Assembly (NCBI GenBank): GCA_025201805.1
Contig: MU619296.1
Location: forward strand, 116,815-180,814
Reading direction: 5' to 3'
From: Parasitella parasitica NRRL 2501
Lineage: Eukaryota; Fungi; Mucoromycota
Length of the DNA stretch: 64,000 nucleotides
Shown here: positions 12,628 through 23,742 of the stretch, piece after piece
Position numbering within the stretch: position 1 is the first letter of the stretch
How the letters are laid out: each line of letters opens with the position of its first letter
Position numbers and translations under genes: made by a program
Notes under the pieces: model-generated
What the model was told of the DNA's origin: nothing
The model's input: the letters and a program-made list of their open reading frames with translations, nothing else
The model's database searches: none

Positions 12628-15600
12628 TCATTCATTATCATCGCTATCAACCCAGGCCTTGGAGATCACATCCTTGCCTGTCTTGATGTTGTTATCGTAT
12701 TCCTCAATCAGCTTTTGGATAGACGCTACTTTAGCAAGCAGAAATTTGATTCTCGCTTCGATTTCCTTGGGTGGTCGGTTGGGCGAATTGATGTTTGTTA
12801 GTTTGTTGATGTTGTCCTCAAGTTTTGCAATGTCTGCCTCGGATTGTTTTTTCAGCGCCATGTTGGTTTCAACCTCCATCGACGCAGCAAAAATCGTGTC
12901 TGACACTAACCTGTTGAACACAGTATAATACACGGGCTTGCCAGGGCGGATGGAGTTTGCACGCCCTTCTTTCTGCACAACAGTAATCATTTCGGCTCTC
13001 TCCAGTGCTTTTAGTGGCGCATCATTACCGAGGAAGGCAGGGCCCCATTTCAATTCATCGTAGTTGATCTATTCACATCAGATTAGATTAGATTCACACA
13101 CTCGCCTGCACAGGCGCAATTCAAGTTCTTACGCTCATTCTGTTTGTAAAGTATTTTACAATCGTCCAGAACTGTGTAGGTGTCCATTCTAATGTACTAC
13201 TCTCATCGGAAGAGTCCCCAAATCCGTATTTGCGAATTTCAATCAAATGTCGAGTGACAATGTCTTCGAAAGCAGCTGTAATTTGTAATTTGGAATAAAA
13301 CGTCAGACTACGCCCAAGGCTTTCTATTCTCACGTCCAAACCTACTCTGGGCATCCATCTTCATCTTCATCTTTTGAACCAGCAGCTCCAGTTCAGTCAA
13401 TCGACCACCAAGAGCAGCAACTACATTAGGGAGATCAGGATCTTGAACTTCAGAGCCGAGCTGTTTGTTGATAAAGGACATGGCCATTTCAGGAGGTGCA
13501 TCCGAAAGCGCAATGTTGGAGAAGCTCTTTCCTGGAAGTGCTTTTCCAAGCGTCTTCATCACGCTTGCATTTGAACTGACAAACACAACATGAGCAATCT
13601 CGTTTTCAATCAGCAAGGCAGCCCATTCAGCAAGCTCTTCCCAAAGCTTAGCATTCTTTGCAGTCTCACGGTACATGTAGTTGTCGATGACCACAATGGG
13701 AATACTCTTTTCGTCCAATTTATCTTCGTCTGCGCTATCATTGCTCTTTTCATCTGGCACAGTGCTCGGTCTGCTTTTACGTCCAGTTATGATGCTCTTC
13801 AATCTTTCAAGAATGTTTTCACGCTGGGCCTTTTCCTTGGCTCTTTTGCGGGCTTCCTTTTCATTGGGCACGACATCTCTTAATGCGATGGCAACCGTCT
13901 CCAGGATGGCTTTGGTCTGAGAGTCTGGATTTGTGGAAAACCCAGTTTTCTGGCCTGTTGTTGCAGCGACGACGGTGTCAATTAAACCATTAATGGACGA
14001 GACCCAGGTGAACACAGGGAAATAACCCACCTCTTTGGCGAGGCTTTTGGTCATGTCCGACTGATGTCTACCGTTACCCACAGTCTCGCAATCAATAAAC
14101 AGCTTATTTCTGGCATCATAAACTTGGTCAGCACAGAGGCTATGCTTAATTTGACATATGCTATATACGTTACTTTCTGTCCTTGATTGCTGATTTCACC
14201 AATGCCGATTTGCCACTTCCTTTATGACCAGAAACAAGCACAAAGGTTTCTAAATGTCTAAGGATTCAGCAACTTGTGCTTGCATTTTTTTTTTTTTTTT
14301 TTATTATTATTATCACATTCTCAACCAACTTACCTGGCGTTTCGGCAAACCATGAAATTAACTTTTCTGTTTTCTCAGTGTCGTCTGCCCAAACAGATGA
14401 GCCAACATTAGCTAAATCTCGAGTACCTCCTGGCATCAACCGGGCCCAGGTTTCATTACGCAGCCAGCGATAAATGGCATACTCTTGAGGATTGAATCTC
14501 TGGTTGATTTTTGATTCGATAAAGAATACACGAATTGGGTCAAACACAGCATAGGTTATCCCTGCAAATACAGCTGCCAGTACCGGAATTGTGATACGAG
14601 GGTGATTTACGAGCCAGTCTTTTACAACGTTTGTGCGCTACAGATGAACTATTATGAGTGCGTTGCATAACATATATATCCGTGTAAATATATATCCATA
14701 TTACCAGCTGTTTTTCGTACAACATGTTCAATCGAGTCCCATCAATGTAATGCCCATGCAAGCAATTGCGAGCGCTGGTAGCATGTCGGACTCTTGTGAA
14801 TTGTGCAATTGCATAACGAGCTGGATCTTTGGCAACAATAGGGTTCGGGTAGAGCGCTATATCAAACACTCTTCCATATGGCCTCAAATGCTGATACAAC
14901 CTCTCTACATTGACAGCTTCCCCTTGAAATTCAATTCGAAGCCGATTGGTTGGGTATCTGGCTATCATGTCTTCCATGAATGGCGATCCCTTGACTAAAA
15001 ATGCTCTGACTGATCGAAAATTGAATGGCGCAACGATGTTATGCTGTGTAATGTATTCGTTGACTCTGGCGACAATGTCAGTTGCAATATTGACTTTTGA
15101 TCCATCAGTGCTTTTGAATGCGAATGTAACAATTGCACCACCATCCTTTGTGCTACAATTGAATGTGGATGGACGATCAGTTCTTCTGGTGTTTTCTATA
15201 TAAATATACATGTAAAACATACCGCGCAAATATCTCCTTAATTGCAAAGTTGTATGGCAGATCTTCGGAAGGTATGGCTTGGTGTGCTTTTGATTCAAGA
15301 AAGTTCTTTGAGTTTCGAAAAAAGATTTGTCGTATGTCCAGACCCCCCATTTTCAAGGGGAATACGTTGTCGAGATAAAGTTGGGCCGTTTGCTCTCTAG
15401 TGACTTGATTGATGGGGATTTCCACAATTGATGGCTATCTCGGATATGAAATTACAGACTAGATGAAATGCACATCTGTTCTACATCTTACCTGAGACAC
15501 GGGGTTAGGAACCTTCGTAGAAGACTCTTCTGCAAGTCTCGCAGACAAGCTTTTGAAACTTCGCGTTCTAGACGCTCTGTTGTGATGAGCAACAAAGTTT

Positions 15601-15695: not shown

Positions 15696-16129
15696 GTTGG
15701 GTCGAACGAAAAGAAAAAGAATGTGTTTTATGCGGGGCTTTTTTCATTTTGTAATTGTAATTTGCATGGAAAGGACTGGGTCGCAAATCACATTTTGACA
15801 TTGGGATGACGGAATTCAATAGACACTTTGTGATAAAGAACTTTTGTATACAGCTATTACAGCATTCAAATTTATGAATTGGTAGATAATATTACATTAT
15901 ACACGCATGATCTACCTTGAAAAAAGAAAGAAAAAAAATCCCTGCATTTGAGTTAGATCTCTTCTTTCTCTTGGCGATCAGCAAAATAAAACAAAAAAGC
16001 ATAGGGGGGTGAAAAGCAAAGAGATGAAAATCATACAATTAAACCCTCTCCTGAAGCATATATAAATACCAAGTAATGTTCAATAAACAGATTCTTCTTC
16101 TCTTTCTCTCTTTTCTTTCCCATCTTGAA

Positions 16130-17337
16130 ATGTCCCGCAATAGCAATACCAAACAAAAGACACCTCTTGTCACACACTTAGTTGCTGGTGGTGCTGCTGG
16201 TCTTATGGAAGCATGCACTTGTCATCCATTAGATACAATTAAAGTGAGAATGCAGCTCTCGAAATCCGGATCAAGAAGCGCTACGGTAAGCCTTGTCTCT
16301 TTGTATATTCCAGGTCATTTGCTAATTGGAGCTTCAGGGTCAACGTCTTGGCTTCTTGGGCGTTGGTGCCAAAATTGTAAGAAATGAGTCGTTTTGGGCA
16401 TTGTATAAAGGTTTAGGTGCTGTTGTGTCTGGCATTGTCCCAAAGATGGCTATCCGCTTTTCTTCTTTTGAGCTTTACAAGTCTTGGATGGCTGATGAAA
16501 ATGGCGTAGTGAGTACCAGCTCCGTATTCTTGGGTAAGTTAGAGACATATATCTACCATGGAAGGATGATATATTAATCGCATCACGTACATACATACAG
16601 CTGGTCTCGCTGCAGGAACTACAGAAGCAGTTTTGGTCGTTAGTCCTATGGATTTGATAAAGATTCGTTTGCAGGTATGTTTGCCAATCAACAAACTTTA
16701 TTTGTGATACTCAAGATGTAAACACAGGCACAACGTCATTCCATGGCTGATCCTTTGGACATCCCCAAGTATCGCAACGCACCTCATGCTGCTTATACCA
16801 TTGTAAAGGAAGAAGGTGTTAGAGCATTATATAAGGGCGTTACATTGACTGCATTGAGACAAGGTAAATATAACCACTACGAGAAGCGGTGCGCATATAT
16901 TAATGTTGGCTGTATATGCGCCTGTGTCTTTAGCTACGAATCAAGCTGCAAACTTCACTGCATACCAAGAAATGAAGAAATTTGCTCAAAATGTTCAAGA
17001 CTTGACCGAGCTGCCTTCATACCAACACTTGATCCTGGGTGGTGTTTCAGGTGCTATGGGTCCGCTTTCCAATGCCCCTATCGATACTATCAAGACTCGT
17101 ATCCAAAGATCCTCTGCTCCCGGTAGTGGTTTCGAAAGATTCAAGACCGTAACCTCTGAAATTATGAGAAAGGAAGGCTTCTTTGCCTTTTATAAGGGTT
17201 TAACTCCTCGTTTATTGAGAGTTGCACCAGGCCAAGCTGTAACCTTCATGGTTTATGAAAGAGTTAAAAGCATTATTGATAGTTTCTCTGAAAAAGTGCA
17301 AGATGGAGAAATTACCACCAAATTGGTCACCAAATAG
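16130..17337 (+). CDS. SFC1: Mitochondrial succinate/fumarate carrier; multi-exon
   Basis: Carrier signatures CHPLDTIKVRMQ, SPMDLIKIRLQAQ, APIDTIKTRIQ, plus the Sfc1-type HSMADPLDIPKYRNA and RVAPGQAVTF. Confidence 0.93.
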
Positions 17338-17821: not shown

Positions 17822-19306
17822 CTACATATTAAGTCTTTCAAAAACGTATTCCTTTTCATCGCCTGTAAAAGGAATGCCCAATTCAATCAACTTCTTGAAG
17901 GCATTTGCAAAATCTTTAAAGAAAGCAGCAGTATCCTTTGCATACAATTCAAAGTAGGGTTTCAGCTTGTCATCTTCCAACATGGTGATCTCAATAGGTA
18001 GCATCATGACTTCGGGATTCGCTTTATCGACCCACTGCCATAGACCATTAGGGAGGTCTTTCTTTACCCACTCACGAGAAGTAATTGCTTTAAAGTACTC
18101 GTTGGAGAAGAAGGTGGGGGCTTCTTGCCAAGGTCCATCGTACCCACTGCGATCAAGGTGACATCTGCCTAAAGAATGAGCACCAACCAATGCAACGATT
18201 TCGCGATCGTTAAAACCCTAAGCAAAACGACATGTTGTTAACCATAATATACACAAATTCCGAGGCTTATTTGGCTGCCGTACCATACGATAAAAGATTT
18301 CACGAACATGATCTGCCTTCTTGGATCCATCAGGAAGACGACCGTCAGGAGTACATTTGTTCTCGCCTTGATCTCGGCGGCCAGGTTTCCACTTAATATC
18401 AGGGCCACCCTTTCGAATAGAATGTTAAAATAATTTCCGATATACATATACAATAGTCAAAACTTACAAGCTCTTGAATAGCAACAACGCCCCCTAATGT
18501 ATACATGTCGCCATAGCTAAGGTCAGGGTATTTAGGCTTGATGTGTTTCTCTAGAAGATCACGAGCGACTTCCAACCCGTTGTTGGCGCTATGCTGTGCT
18601 TCCGCTCTGAACCGCATTGTGCCGCCGTTACTACCACCAGAACCGTCCTCAACATTGTAAGTACCAGATGAATGCCAGGCTAAACGCAAAAGGACGGGTC
18701 CATAAGATCCATCATCATAACTAAGTTATATACACACAATCAGATGGCTTGGCGTAATAACTTTTAATATTATGGAATTACTCACTCTTCATTGGAATCC
18801 AATAATTCAGCAATATCATTGTAGACTTGTTGATAGTTGATTTCTTTTTCGGGTGCTGTCTTTTTAGAGCTGTCAGGCTTGTTGGTAGGCTCTTTCCTCG
18901 TGTCGTTTTTTGGTTTTGAGGTGCTTTTAGGTCCTGGCTCCATCTCCTGATCCTTTGTGGTAGCTGCAGCTGCAGTATTCTCGAGCTGCTCTTTATGGAC
19001 GACCTCATCGATTTTATCTGCTCTCTTTTTTTGATAATATGTGTATGCGGCGCCGAGAGAGATACAGCCTAATTAAACGGGCATGATAAATAAGAGTAGG
19101 CGTAATTTATTGCACGTATAAGGTGGATTACCAATCCATAACAAAGGGTTCGAGCCTGAACTATGATTTCCTGCAGGAGGGACAGTAGCAAAAGAACGAC
19201 GCATAATGGTGGATGTACGGACATTGACTGTCAAAGCTGTAGGTCGAATTGACTGACGTGCGCCGTAGCGAGATGCAAGACAGCCGAGTGTACGCAAGGA
19301 AGACAT
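17822..19306 (-). CDS. CCP1: Mitochondrial cytochrome c peroxidase; multi-exon
   Basis: Presequence and TM segment; [21 protein letters not shown] (distal R/W/H); GAHSLGRCH (proximal His); SGYDGPW (Trp191 equivalent). Confidence 0.93.
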
Positions 19307-20270: not shown

Positions 20271-21617
20271 ATGAATGGCAACGTAGATTTAAAGGATTCT
20301 CGCGTGCCTACCTTTATTCCATTTGAACGAAATGTAGATAAGTCAGCGACAAACCCTGCTACCAAAAGAAAAAGAACCGCAAAAAGCGACAACACGACTA
20401 AACCTCAAAAGAAAAAGACATCAAAATCTGTTAAAAAAGGTAGCCTCATACCGTTGCCATCGTTACAACTTATTTATTCTTTGGTTTAGTCAAGCAATCT
20501 TTCAAAGAAGAGTCTAGTCAAGAGGATATTGAGGTAAGCTATACGCTGATACAAGAGAGGGGAGGTAACTGATTTCCTACGTAACTGAAAAGGAACCTAT
20601 TGTTCATCATGTTTGGATTGGTGCTGCAACAAATGAAAAAAAGGGTGCTTTTGCCATCTATCACGGCGAAAAGGATAAACGAAACTACACTCATGTCTTC
20701 GAGAAGAAAGACGCACTTGAAGACTTAGAATACGCATACGTTTTGGTCAGTATAGTAACATGAGTACAGCACTCGATTGCATAATACTAAACGAGGCGTC
20801 TATTAAAGGGTGCCTTGAAAGCCGTTAGGTTGTCCAAAAATGACAATACACCTGTTATTGTAAACACCACTTGTAGAGATTTGCCAAGAGCTATTGCTGG
20901 TAAAGCAAGGGCTTTCCATTATGAGAACATGGCCCACGAAATTCGTGATATTATAGATAAAAAAGAACAACTTTTGTCTGTGGTAAAATGCAAATATCAA
21001 ACAAAAATTCACATTGAAATGTAACACGGTTTTTTATTATTAGCGCCATAATTCAGATAGACATGCCACTAATAATCAAAAGGCAGCTTTGGCTCTTGCA
21101 GAAAAAGCTTTGGATGGAAGGTAACTAATAAGTATTTATGGTATGCTATCCAGTTTATTCAGTGGTCTTTCATTTCCAAATTTTCAGCAATCAAGACAAG
21201 CAAGAGATCGAAAACTTGACTGTGGGAGAGCTAACGCGAGTTGTAGAGAAAGAAACAGAAGATGCGACTTTAGTTTCTTCGACCACTAACGAAGATCAGT
21301 TAAACCTCATTGTAGAGGGTGCGATTAATACTGCTGCAGAAATTGATGCCGAAACGATTCAAGAAGCTGTAGAGTCTGCCATCAATTCTAATGCATCAGT
21401 TGACAAGGATGTTGTCGTGGAAACGCAAGTTGAAACTTCAGTGGAGACCACAGTTGAAGTCAAAGTCATTGAAAATCAAACAGAAACATCAGCCTTTGAG
21501 CCGATGGACTTGGTACAAGAAGAAGCACAGGCACCCAAGTCATCCTGGGCCACTGTGTTGGGTCTTCAAAGCATTATCAATGTATTAAGCTCTCCTTTCA
21601 AAGCACGTAGAAACTAA
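20271..21617 (+). CDS. Six-exon gene: basic NLS-like N-terminus, RNase H1-like domain without catalytic residues, acidic tail
   Basis: Exons 20271-20439, 20490-20533, 20593-20745, 20809-20982, 21044-21120, 21189-21617 splice in frame at GT-AG sites. The central domain follows the RNase HI secondary-structure pattern (by-eye alignment). Confidence 0.75.
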
Positions 21618-22965: not shown

Positions 22966-23742
22966 ATGGATAGCATCTTTTCATCGTCCCAATCTCCTCT
23001 AGACTCGCTTGTATTTGATTCAGTGACAGATCCTCTTAAACCATTGGATATGGAAACAAAAGAAAACCTTGAATTATGGGTATATACATGCTTTTTTTTC
23101 AAAGAGATTAACTATCCTGGATACTCATCTATCCCATAGACAAATGTTCAATTTACACACGATGTTCAGCCAGGAAGTGGTCTTTATAATGACTCTATAA
23201 AATCTCCACTCTCATCAGTATCAAGCCAAGAATCTACCAGTGCTGCTTCAAGTAATAGTCTGTCAAATATAACTTATGAAAGTCTTGCAAATTACTTGGA
23301 TTTCGAGCTTCCTAAACAACATTTAACAGTACAAATTGATGATCAAAATAAACAACAGCAACAGCAATCGAGACGACAATTACTATTACCCAAAATTCCA
23401 TCTAATGCAACCCTTGAAGAAATCACCAAAGTTTTATTCTCGAGTATACCTAATACAGCAGCAGCTACAACTACCACTAAAATCCCCATCACATCTACAA
23501 CAGCCAAAATAAGCAAAGAAAAATCGGCGGTTGAAGAAGAAAAAAGAAAAAGAAATACAGCCGCAAGTGCAAGGTTTCGCATCAAGAAGAAACAAAAAGA
23601 GCAATCCATGGAACAAACTGTTCGTGAATTGACTCAAAAATCAAGTGGATTAGAGAACCGTGTCAAAGAATTAGAGCTTGAAATCAAATTTTTGAGAGGT
23701 CTCTTGATTGAAAAGAAGCAAGACGAAGAAAATGCCAACTAG
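22966..23742 (+). CDS. bZIP transcription factor, MetR/Cys-3/Zip1-like; one intron
   Basis: bZIP EEEKRKRNTAASARFRIKKK...LENRVKELELEIKFLRGLL. The N-terminal LELW|TNVQF motif across the intron resembles the MetR-family motif. Confidence 0.85.

Follow-up and report, generated by a model that had tools for sequence, protein, structure and literature searches.

A probably non-catalytic paralogue of cellular RNase H1 in Parasitella parasitica and related Mucorales

We analysed a 64,000-nt stretch of DNA from Parasitella parasitica NRRL 2501 (contig MU619296.1 of assembly GCA_025201805.1, positions 116,815 to 180,814 of the forward strand; hereafter, the window), in which a first-pass annotation, made from the sequence alone, had proposed an intact gene for a catalytically dead protein with an RNase H1 fold at positions 20271–21617. 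Our analysis indicates that the product of this gene is probably a paralogue of cellular RNase H1 that lacks catalysis, known so far from Mucorales only, and that it would most likely act as a nuclear adaptor or scaffold in which the old active-site cleft has been rebuilt.

The gene consists of six exons and five GT..AG introns on the plus strand, and joining of the exons gave 1047 nt, corresponding to 348 codons and a TAA stop codon. A phmmer search of 1.84 billion representatives with the 58 amino acids of exon 4 retrieved a 348-amino-acid protein at 100% identity, KAI8641217.1 (hypothetical protein BD408DRAFT_418585, Parasitella parasitica), which was identical to the spliced model over its whole length. 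Exon 4 was single-copy in the 32.8-Mb, 450-contig assembly. The joined exons reproduced exactly the peptide that the first-pass annotation had derived from exons 3 to 5, and the five introns that it had described as clean and in frame were all of the GT..AG type, 50–67 nt long, and left the 348-codon frame of the database protein. The end it implied for exon 1 was one base too far: exon 1 has to stop at 20439 for the frame to close. Because intron 3 contains an in-frame stop, the domain described below is not readable without splicing. In a separate observation, exon 4 also matched a 5843-amino-acid protein weakly in four stretches (E-value 7.5e-5, query residues 9–32), a match that is probably due to repeats or composition.

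To define the protein family, a word-indexed search was carried out with KAI8641217.1 and then with an 11-sequence profile, taking the best 8000 candidates by shared 5-mers. Among the matches listed, at least 19 distinct full-length members were found, all of them from Mucorales, in the genera Parasitella, Mucor (M. circinelloides, M. lusitanicus, M. fragilis, M. velutinosus, M. bainieri, and M. hiemalis), Cokeromyces, Benjaminiella, Blakeslea, Choanephora, Gilbertella, Rhizopus, and Sporodiniella. The matches listed included no member from Thamnidium, Cunninghamella, Absidia, Umbelopsis, or Mortierella relatives, although the RNase H1 proteins of these fungi are in the same database, which is suggestive of a family confined to the core Mucorales. 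None of the 19 members had a Pfam domain on record, and their names were of the “hypothetical” type, except for the label “oxidation resistance protein 1” (NCBI and UniRef) on the Mucor velutinosus orthologue. This identity was rejected, as the protein aligned over its full length with the family and no Pfam domain is recorded for it, and the name seems to be an error that has been propagated. The deposited model of the M. hiemalis member also looks wrong, with a 38-residue N-terminal extension and 24 residues of b2–b3 missing relative to a transcript-derived orthologue. No description of this family, or of any free-standing catalytically dead cellular RNase H1 paralogue, was found in the literature, which agrees with the earlier view of the gene as undescribed.

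The alignment of the 19 members showed four zones, namely a basic N-terminal region, a well-conserved domain some 135 residues long, a tail that is variable and strongly acidic, and a conserved basic C-terminal motif. In the Parasitella protein, residues 1–72 carried a net charge of +7, and the region encoded by exon 1 was predicted with a predicted local distance difference test (pLDDT) score below 55. The net charge of residues 208–320 was −23, and that of the acidic tail ranged from −18 to −46 across the family. The KRKR and KKK motifs and the acidic tail, which had been noted earlier in the single sequence, were thus present and conserved: K32, R33, R35, and K44 were nearly invariant, and P45 was invariant. 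The bipartite stretch formed by these motifs would be a nuclear localization signal (NLS), which suggests a nuclear location. In the C-terminal motif, composed of SSW, a short helix, L..SPF, and basic residues, S325 was invariant, and W326, L339, P342, and F343 were nearly so.

The fold of the protein was predicted by AlphaFold2, run twice, with 11-sequence and 19-sequence alignments. Both runs gave the same core of about residues 72–207, with pLDDT values of 80–92 in the first and 84–96 in the second, and the remainder was predicted to be disordered. The core was composed of b1 (76–84), b2 (88–94), b3 (103–108), aA (116–133), b4 (138–142), aB (146–152), aD (161–173), b5 (178–182), and aE (from 190 on). 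The resulting topology, b-b-b-a-b-a-a-b-a, is the order b1-b2-b3-aA-b4-aB-(aC)-aD-b5-aE of type-1 RNases H, with their five-stranded mixed sheet. Foldseek against PDB listed matches to type-1 RNases H only, some of them cellular enzymes and others the RNase H domains of reverse transcriptases, with a best E-value of 4.5e-6, a probability of 1.00, and template modelling scores of up to 0.67 on the target. Further, ESM language-model features led to “Ribonuclease H” clusters with a score of 0.93. Exon-by-exon searches of Pfam and PDB sequences, in contrast, gave nothing meaningful, and a full-length Pfam search and a family-profile search of PDB sequences gave nothing relevant. The PF00075 model had no match even at E ≤ 10, either for the exons or for three full-length family proteins, and its gathering threshold was not reached; a six-frame PF00075 scan of the genome reported six other loci and not 20271–21617. 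These results show that the relationship is hidden from sequence-to-model methods and visible only by profile-profile comparison, structure, and language-model features.

We then compared the family with RNase H profiles by hhalign. Against a profile of 26 eukaryotic RNase H1 sequences, the probability was 96.2% (E-value 2.6e-9) over 125 columns, from b1 to aE and in the expected register, a profile-profile homology that supports common descent with RNase H type 1 (the PF00075 family). A normal RNase H1 with a hybrid-binding domain is encoded elsewhere in the genome (G000:C37; PF00075 at 123.7 bits), and comparison of the family with this single sequence gave 80% (E-value 1.4e-5). Five weak PF00075 matches (24–29 bits) in long open frames (G000:C189, C94, C55, C99, and C72) were taken for retroelement-type RNase H, and two of them, compared with the family as negative controls, gave 0.4%. 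Together with the AlphaFold2 core and the Foldseek matches, the hhalign alignment bears out the end-to-end RNase H1 scaffold that had been aligned by eye, and the structure prediction proposed earlier as a check recovered an RNase H1 fold without the D-E-D-D site.

The family and eukaryotic RNase H1 had in common the G..Y.G..D.RN loop, which is typical of the latter, and the Sporodiniella member retained an enzyme-like A-D-x-L-A in helix aE. We read these data as pointing to an old duplicate of cellular RNase H1 rather than to a domesticated retroelement domain. Derivation from a retrotransposon RNase H would thus be very improbable, since the profile match, including this loop, is to cellular RNase H1, the comparison with the retroelement open reading frames (ORFs) of the genome gave next to nothing, and the flanks hold no reverse transcriptase or integrase remnants; the neighbours are host genes in conserved order, with which the locus is syntenic.

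The catalytic positions of RNase H1 were then inspected in the alignment of the 19 members. In place of the YTDG of the enzyme, the Parasitella protein has W79-I80-G81-A82 (20614–20625), with an invariant Trp where the enzyme has Tyr. The first catalytic Asp aligned either to I80 or, by hhalign with the 26 RNase H1 sequences, to a deletion of one residue that lies between I80 and G81; the VIA ranges fit either I80 or G81, and the family has Ile or Val at position 80. In either case, no member had an acidic residue at positions 79–82. The catalytic Glu was replaced by Y120 (20737–20739; Y in 15 members, H in 3, and S in 1), the second Asp by T143 (20869–20871; T in 11, G in 4, S in 2, and A in 2), and the fourth Asp by L196 (21089–21091; L in 8, I in 8, M in 2, and D in 1, the Sporodiniella member only). 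An acid was therefore found at the first three catalytic positions in 0 of 19 members, and the carboxylate set of RNase H type 1, D-E-D-D or D-E-D-E, was absent. Of the four ligand replacements read earlier from the single sequence, those of the Glu by Y120, the second Asp by T143, and the fourth Asp by L196 held, and that of the first Asp by G81 became unclear, I80 or a gap being the aligned counterpart. The conserved His of the b5-aE loop, in turn, was replaced by an invariant Arg, R186 (21059–21061).

The loss of these positions suggests that two-metal cutting of hybrids by the protein is very unlikely. An alternative is that the protein is still an enzyme whose catalytic groups (D/E117, D146, H182, and R145/R181/R186) have migrated, giving a residual metal-dependent nuclease or a new chemistry. 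Invariant polar residues are indeed gathered on the segments that form the active site: D/E117 precedes position 120 by one helical turn, and D146 follows position 143 by three residues. Further, the fourth acidic residue is known to migrate in type-1 RNases H, as in LC9-RNase H1 (PDB 4ibn). The first Asp, however, has no acidic replacement at residues 79–82, and the conserved acids close by number two or three at most, which makes such an enzyme quite improbable. The first Asp bridges both metals in all RNases H.

The elements by which RNase H1 holds its substrate were also altered. The residues W218 and W223 of the RNase H1 encoded elsewhere in the genome, which are invariant in the 26-sequence profile, fell in a gap of 13–14 residues in the family, and AlphaFold2 passed from aB straight to aD, so that the basic protrusion with its two Trp residues (the DNA-binding channel) is lost; the first-pass annotation had described it as shortened. 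A full-length Pfam search of family proteins gave no match to the hybrid-binding domain PF01693. The full-length RNase H1 homologues examined among the matches listed, in contrast, all carried PF01693, and a few truncated or variant entries had PF00075 only. In human RNase H1, we take R179, T181, and N240 to form the phosphate pocket and N151, N182, and Q183 to contact 2′-OH groups, and the family positions aligned to these residues were variable, hydrophobic, or acidic. The net charge of the domain was −8 to +4, compared with −4 to +6 (median +2.5) in RNase H1 domains, a difference that is weak evidence. Taken together, these data suggest that the canonical grip on hybrids has probably not been kept.

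These results bear on the earlier suggestion that the protein binds or protects RNA:DNA hybrids, which they leave unsupported and somewhat disfavoured. In such a role, the dead domain and the basic N-terminal region would bind hybrids and thereby shield or mark R-loops or retroelement replication intermediates. The type-1 fold, the descent from RNase H1, the conserved basic residues R145, R181, R186, and K193 on cleft-forming segments, and the lysine-rich N-terminal region are all consistent with it, and there is a general precedent in engineered catalytically dead RNase H1, which binds hybrids. The missing hybrid-binding domain, the deleted protrusion with its invariant Trp pair, the variable or hydrophobic residues at the presumed phosphate and 2′-OH contacts, and, as a weak point, the slightly more acidic character of the domain argue against it. 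On balance, we regard a hybrid or R-loop reader as fairly unlikely.

To determine whether the gene is maintained by selection, orthologous loci of a second P. parasitica assembly (GCA_000938895.1), Mucor lusitanicus, and M. circinelloides were compared. All three loci kept the position and phase of all five introns, whose lengths varied freely, and in all three the gene was preceded by a peroxidase gene on the opposite strand and followed by a bZIP gene, matching the window neighbours at 17822–18689 (−) and 23296–23742 (+). Ratios of nonsynonymous to synonymous substitution rates (dN/dS) were calculated by the Nei-Gojobori method for six locus pairs. For the RNase H-like domain, dN/dS was 0.21 at a dS of 0.31 between the two Parasitella assemblies and 0.10 at a dS of 0.66 between the two Mucor species, values that bear on a check proposed with the original prediction. 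Over all six pairs, dN/dS was 0.11–0.29 for the whole gene and 0–0.10 for the C-terminal motif. The proteins of the two assemblies labelled Parasitella parasitica were 21% apart (dS 0.37), and their RNase H1 proteins were 17% apart; this divergence exceeds what is expected within a species, and the strains may be very divergent or one of the labels may be wrong.

Transcripts were examined in Logan assemblies, three of which (SRR14532547, SRR14532556, and SRR14532558) each contained an uninterrupted 1044-nt ORF of a Mucor hiemalis-like orthologue. When one of these contigs was aligned to the M. hiemalis genomic locus, with gap ends slid by up to about four bases, six GT..AG segments of 55–62 nt were missing from the contig, as were the introns of the adjoining peroxidase gene, indicating an origin of the contig from spliced RNA. 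Of the six junctions, four mapped to introns 1, 3, 4, and 5 of the window gene, one lay near intron 2 in a poorly aligned stretch, and one, near residue 149, corresponded to an extra intron of the M. hiemalis lineage. These homologous junctions support the splice model through orthologue transcripts, and to that extent the transcript check proposed earlier was passed; Parasitella transcripts are not part of this evidence. In Parasitella and the M. circinelloides group, exon 4 is uninterrupted at the site of the extra intron, which suggests gain or loss of an intron during the evolution of the family.

These data show that the gene is real and under purifying selection, and that its orthologue is transcribed and spliced. 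The reading of the gene as an annotation artefact or a decaying pseudogene, for which the missing Pfam domain and the merely “hypothetical” names, save one unsupported label, might speak, is effectively refuted by the 19 orthologues with invariant motifs, the low whole-gene dN/dS, the conserved introns, the spliced orthologue transcripts, and the confident fold. The first-pass annotation had likewise argued against decay, and the kept synteny agrees with it.

We next considered what has been conserved in place of the catalytic site. The invariant or near-invariant residues of the domain were W79, G81, A82, Y118, T142, C144, R145, D146, L147, P148, V180, R181, H182, S184, R186, K193, A195, and A199. 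Among these, R145, D146, L147, and R181 were invariant, H182 was present in 17 of the 19 members, and S184 in 18. In RNases H, the active-site cleft is formed by five segments, namely b1, the beginnings of aA and aE, the b4-aB turn, and the b5 loop, and it is on these that the conserved residues are found. Together with the two short terminal motifs, these segments show the strongest conservation in the family. Since the most conserved residues, among them Y120, lie on these segments, it is most likely that the old cleft now forms a rebuilt pocket, rich in Arg, His, and Tyr, which binds another ligand, and the character of such a pocket suggests a partner protein or a phosphate-bearing molecule. 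With the domain flanked by a basic disordered N-terminal region carrying the bipartite NLS-like motif and by a long acidic tail, the protein would be a nuclear adaptor or scaffold that recruits partners via the rebuilt pocket and the two near-invariant terminal motifs. A bolder possibility is that the rebuilt cleft (R145-D146, R181-H182-S184-R186, Y118/Y120, D/E117, and K193) serves a new function, as a catalytic centre newly formed on the RNase H scaffold or as a specific reader of a phosphate-bearing ligand or a nucleic-acid end; we consider this doubtful. If it were true, the protein would be a lineage-specific nuclear factor of Mucorales, possibly tied to their unusual RNA interference, retrotransposon, or centromere biology.

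Several points weigh against the adaptor or scaffold reading. The placing of the conserved residues around one pocket would follow from the alignment and the general architecture of RNases H, not from coordinates. The conserved acids D/E117 and D146 near the old site could still hold a metal, and there is a small chance of a relocated metal site formed by them. The terminal motifs match no nameable motif class; an inspection by eye of the N-terminal RVP(T/S)F(I/V) motif against the patterns of PP1 (RVxF), calcineurin (LxVP), and PCNA (PIP box) showed no fit. Neither AlphaFold2 model confidently docked or structured these motifs (pLDDT of about 45–59), and in the run with the deeper alignment, which was aimed at their docking on the domain, the pLDDT stayed at 51–57. 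Further, the transcript evidence comes from an orthologue and not from Parasitella itself, and the absence of the family outside the core Mucorales rests on the best 8000 candidates of the word-indexed search.

Pseudoenzymes are common, and comparison with known proteins helps to place the family among them. Eukaryotic RNase H1 (PF00075 with PF01693, as in human RNASEH1 and the genome's own copy) has the catalytic tetrad, the His, the Trp protrusion, the contact positions, and the hybrid-binding domain; the family lacks all of these and has gained the basic N-terminal region, the acidic tail, the two terminal motifs, and the signatures NTTCRDLP and VRH.S.R. The archaeal Sulfolobus tokodaii RNase HI (3aly) and the metagenomic LC11-RNase H1 (3u3g/4h8k) are also without the basic protrusion, but they are active enzymes with a full carboxylate set, and no sequence-level link of the family to them was found in the exon searches of Pfam and PDB or in the family-profile search of PDB. 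Non-catalytic RNase H-like domains also occur inside large proteins, such as the RH domain of Prp8, where the fold has been put to use for binding or scaffolding. A paper on Arabidopsis RNase H1 reports no inactive paralogue. The nearest conceptual precedent appears to be Ssd1, a fungal pseudonuclease of the RNase II family which, according to PMC8097288 and PMC8934651, recognises RNA at an alternative site and not at the old active site. The event would be of the same kind, a fungal lineage keeping a nuclease fold after the loss of catalytic residues, but Ssd1 differs in fold and superfamily, and its ligand and biology are known.

The family offers a clean natural experiment on the function of an RNase H1 fold after the loss of catalysis and of the canonical hybrid contacts. 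The protein is lineage-specific and probably nuclear, and an orthologue is present in the genetically tractable Mucor lusitanicus. The core Mucorales include the agents of mucormycosis, and their genome-defence biology is unusual. If the protein were found to bind hybrids or to regulate R-loops or retroelements, it would represent a natural equivalent of the engineered dead RNase H1 with which R-loops are probed. The coordinates of the gene and of its parts are collected in Table 1.

Table 1. Parts of the RNase H1-like gene, in window coordinates.
Feature	Position	Strand	Description
Whole gene, ATG to TAA	20271..21617	+	Encodes the 348-amino-acid protein, NCBI KAI8641217.1
Exon 1, codons 1–56 plus 1 nt	20271..20439	+	Basic N-terminal region, predicted disordered
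N-terminal short motif, residues 7–18 (LKDSRVPTFIPF)	20289..20324	+	R11, V12, P13, and F15 invariant in 19/19
Bipartite-NLS-like stretch, residues 32–52	20364..20426	+	KRKR, 11-residue spacer, KKK; classical bipartite pattern
Intron 1, 50 nt, GT..AG, phase 1	20440..20489	+	Position and phase kept in the three orthologous loci
Exon 2, rest of codon 57 to codon 71	20490..20533	+	Linker
Intron 2, 59 nt, GT..AG, phase 0	20534..20592	+	
Exon 3, codons 72–122	20593..20745	+	b1–b3 and start of helix aA, RNase H-like domain
Intron 3, 63 nt, GT..AG, phase 0	20746..20808	+	In-frame stop if retained
Exon 4, codons 123–180	20809..20982	+	aA, b4, aB, aD, and start of b5; basic protrusion absent between aB and aD
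Family signature N141-T-T-C-R-D-L-P148	20863..20886	+	From the alignment of 19
Intron 4, 61 nt, GT..AG, phase 0	20983..21043	+	
Exon 5, codons 181–205 plus 2 nt	21044..21120	+	End of b5, loop, helix aE
Intron 5, 67 nt, GT..AG, phase 2	21121..21187	+	
Exon 6, first part, residues 206–320	21188..21530	+	aE extension, then acidic tail rich in Glu, Thr, and Val, predicted disordered
Exon 6, last part, residues 321–348 plus stop	21531..21617	+	Conserved basic C-terminal motif

Among the neighbouring genes in the window, that at 17822–18689 (−) encodes a haem peroxidase (PF00141, cytochrome c peroxidase-like) and is split by introns, and that at 23296–23742 (+) encodes a bZIP_2 transcription factor; Parasitella, M. 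lusitanicus, M. circinelloides, and M. hiemalis all have the peroxidase gene, the RNase H1-like gene, and the bZIP gene in this order. Further upstream, ORF fragments at 16076–17337 (+) belong to a mitochondrial-carrier-like gene and those at 13308–15298 (−) to an RRM-like gene split by introns, and both look like ordinary fungal genes. Outside the fungi, a contig of Apilactobacillus apinorum (NZ_BAABVU010000012.1) matched residues 6–271 of the fungal RNase H1, covering the hybrid-binding and catalytic domains, with 59% identity in the best segment; the match may reflect either contamination or a Firmicute RNase H of the ordinary kind that carries a hybrid-binding domain.

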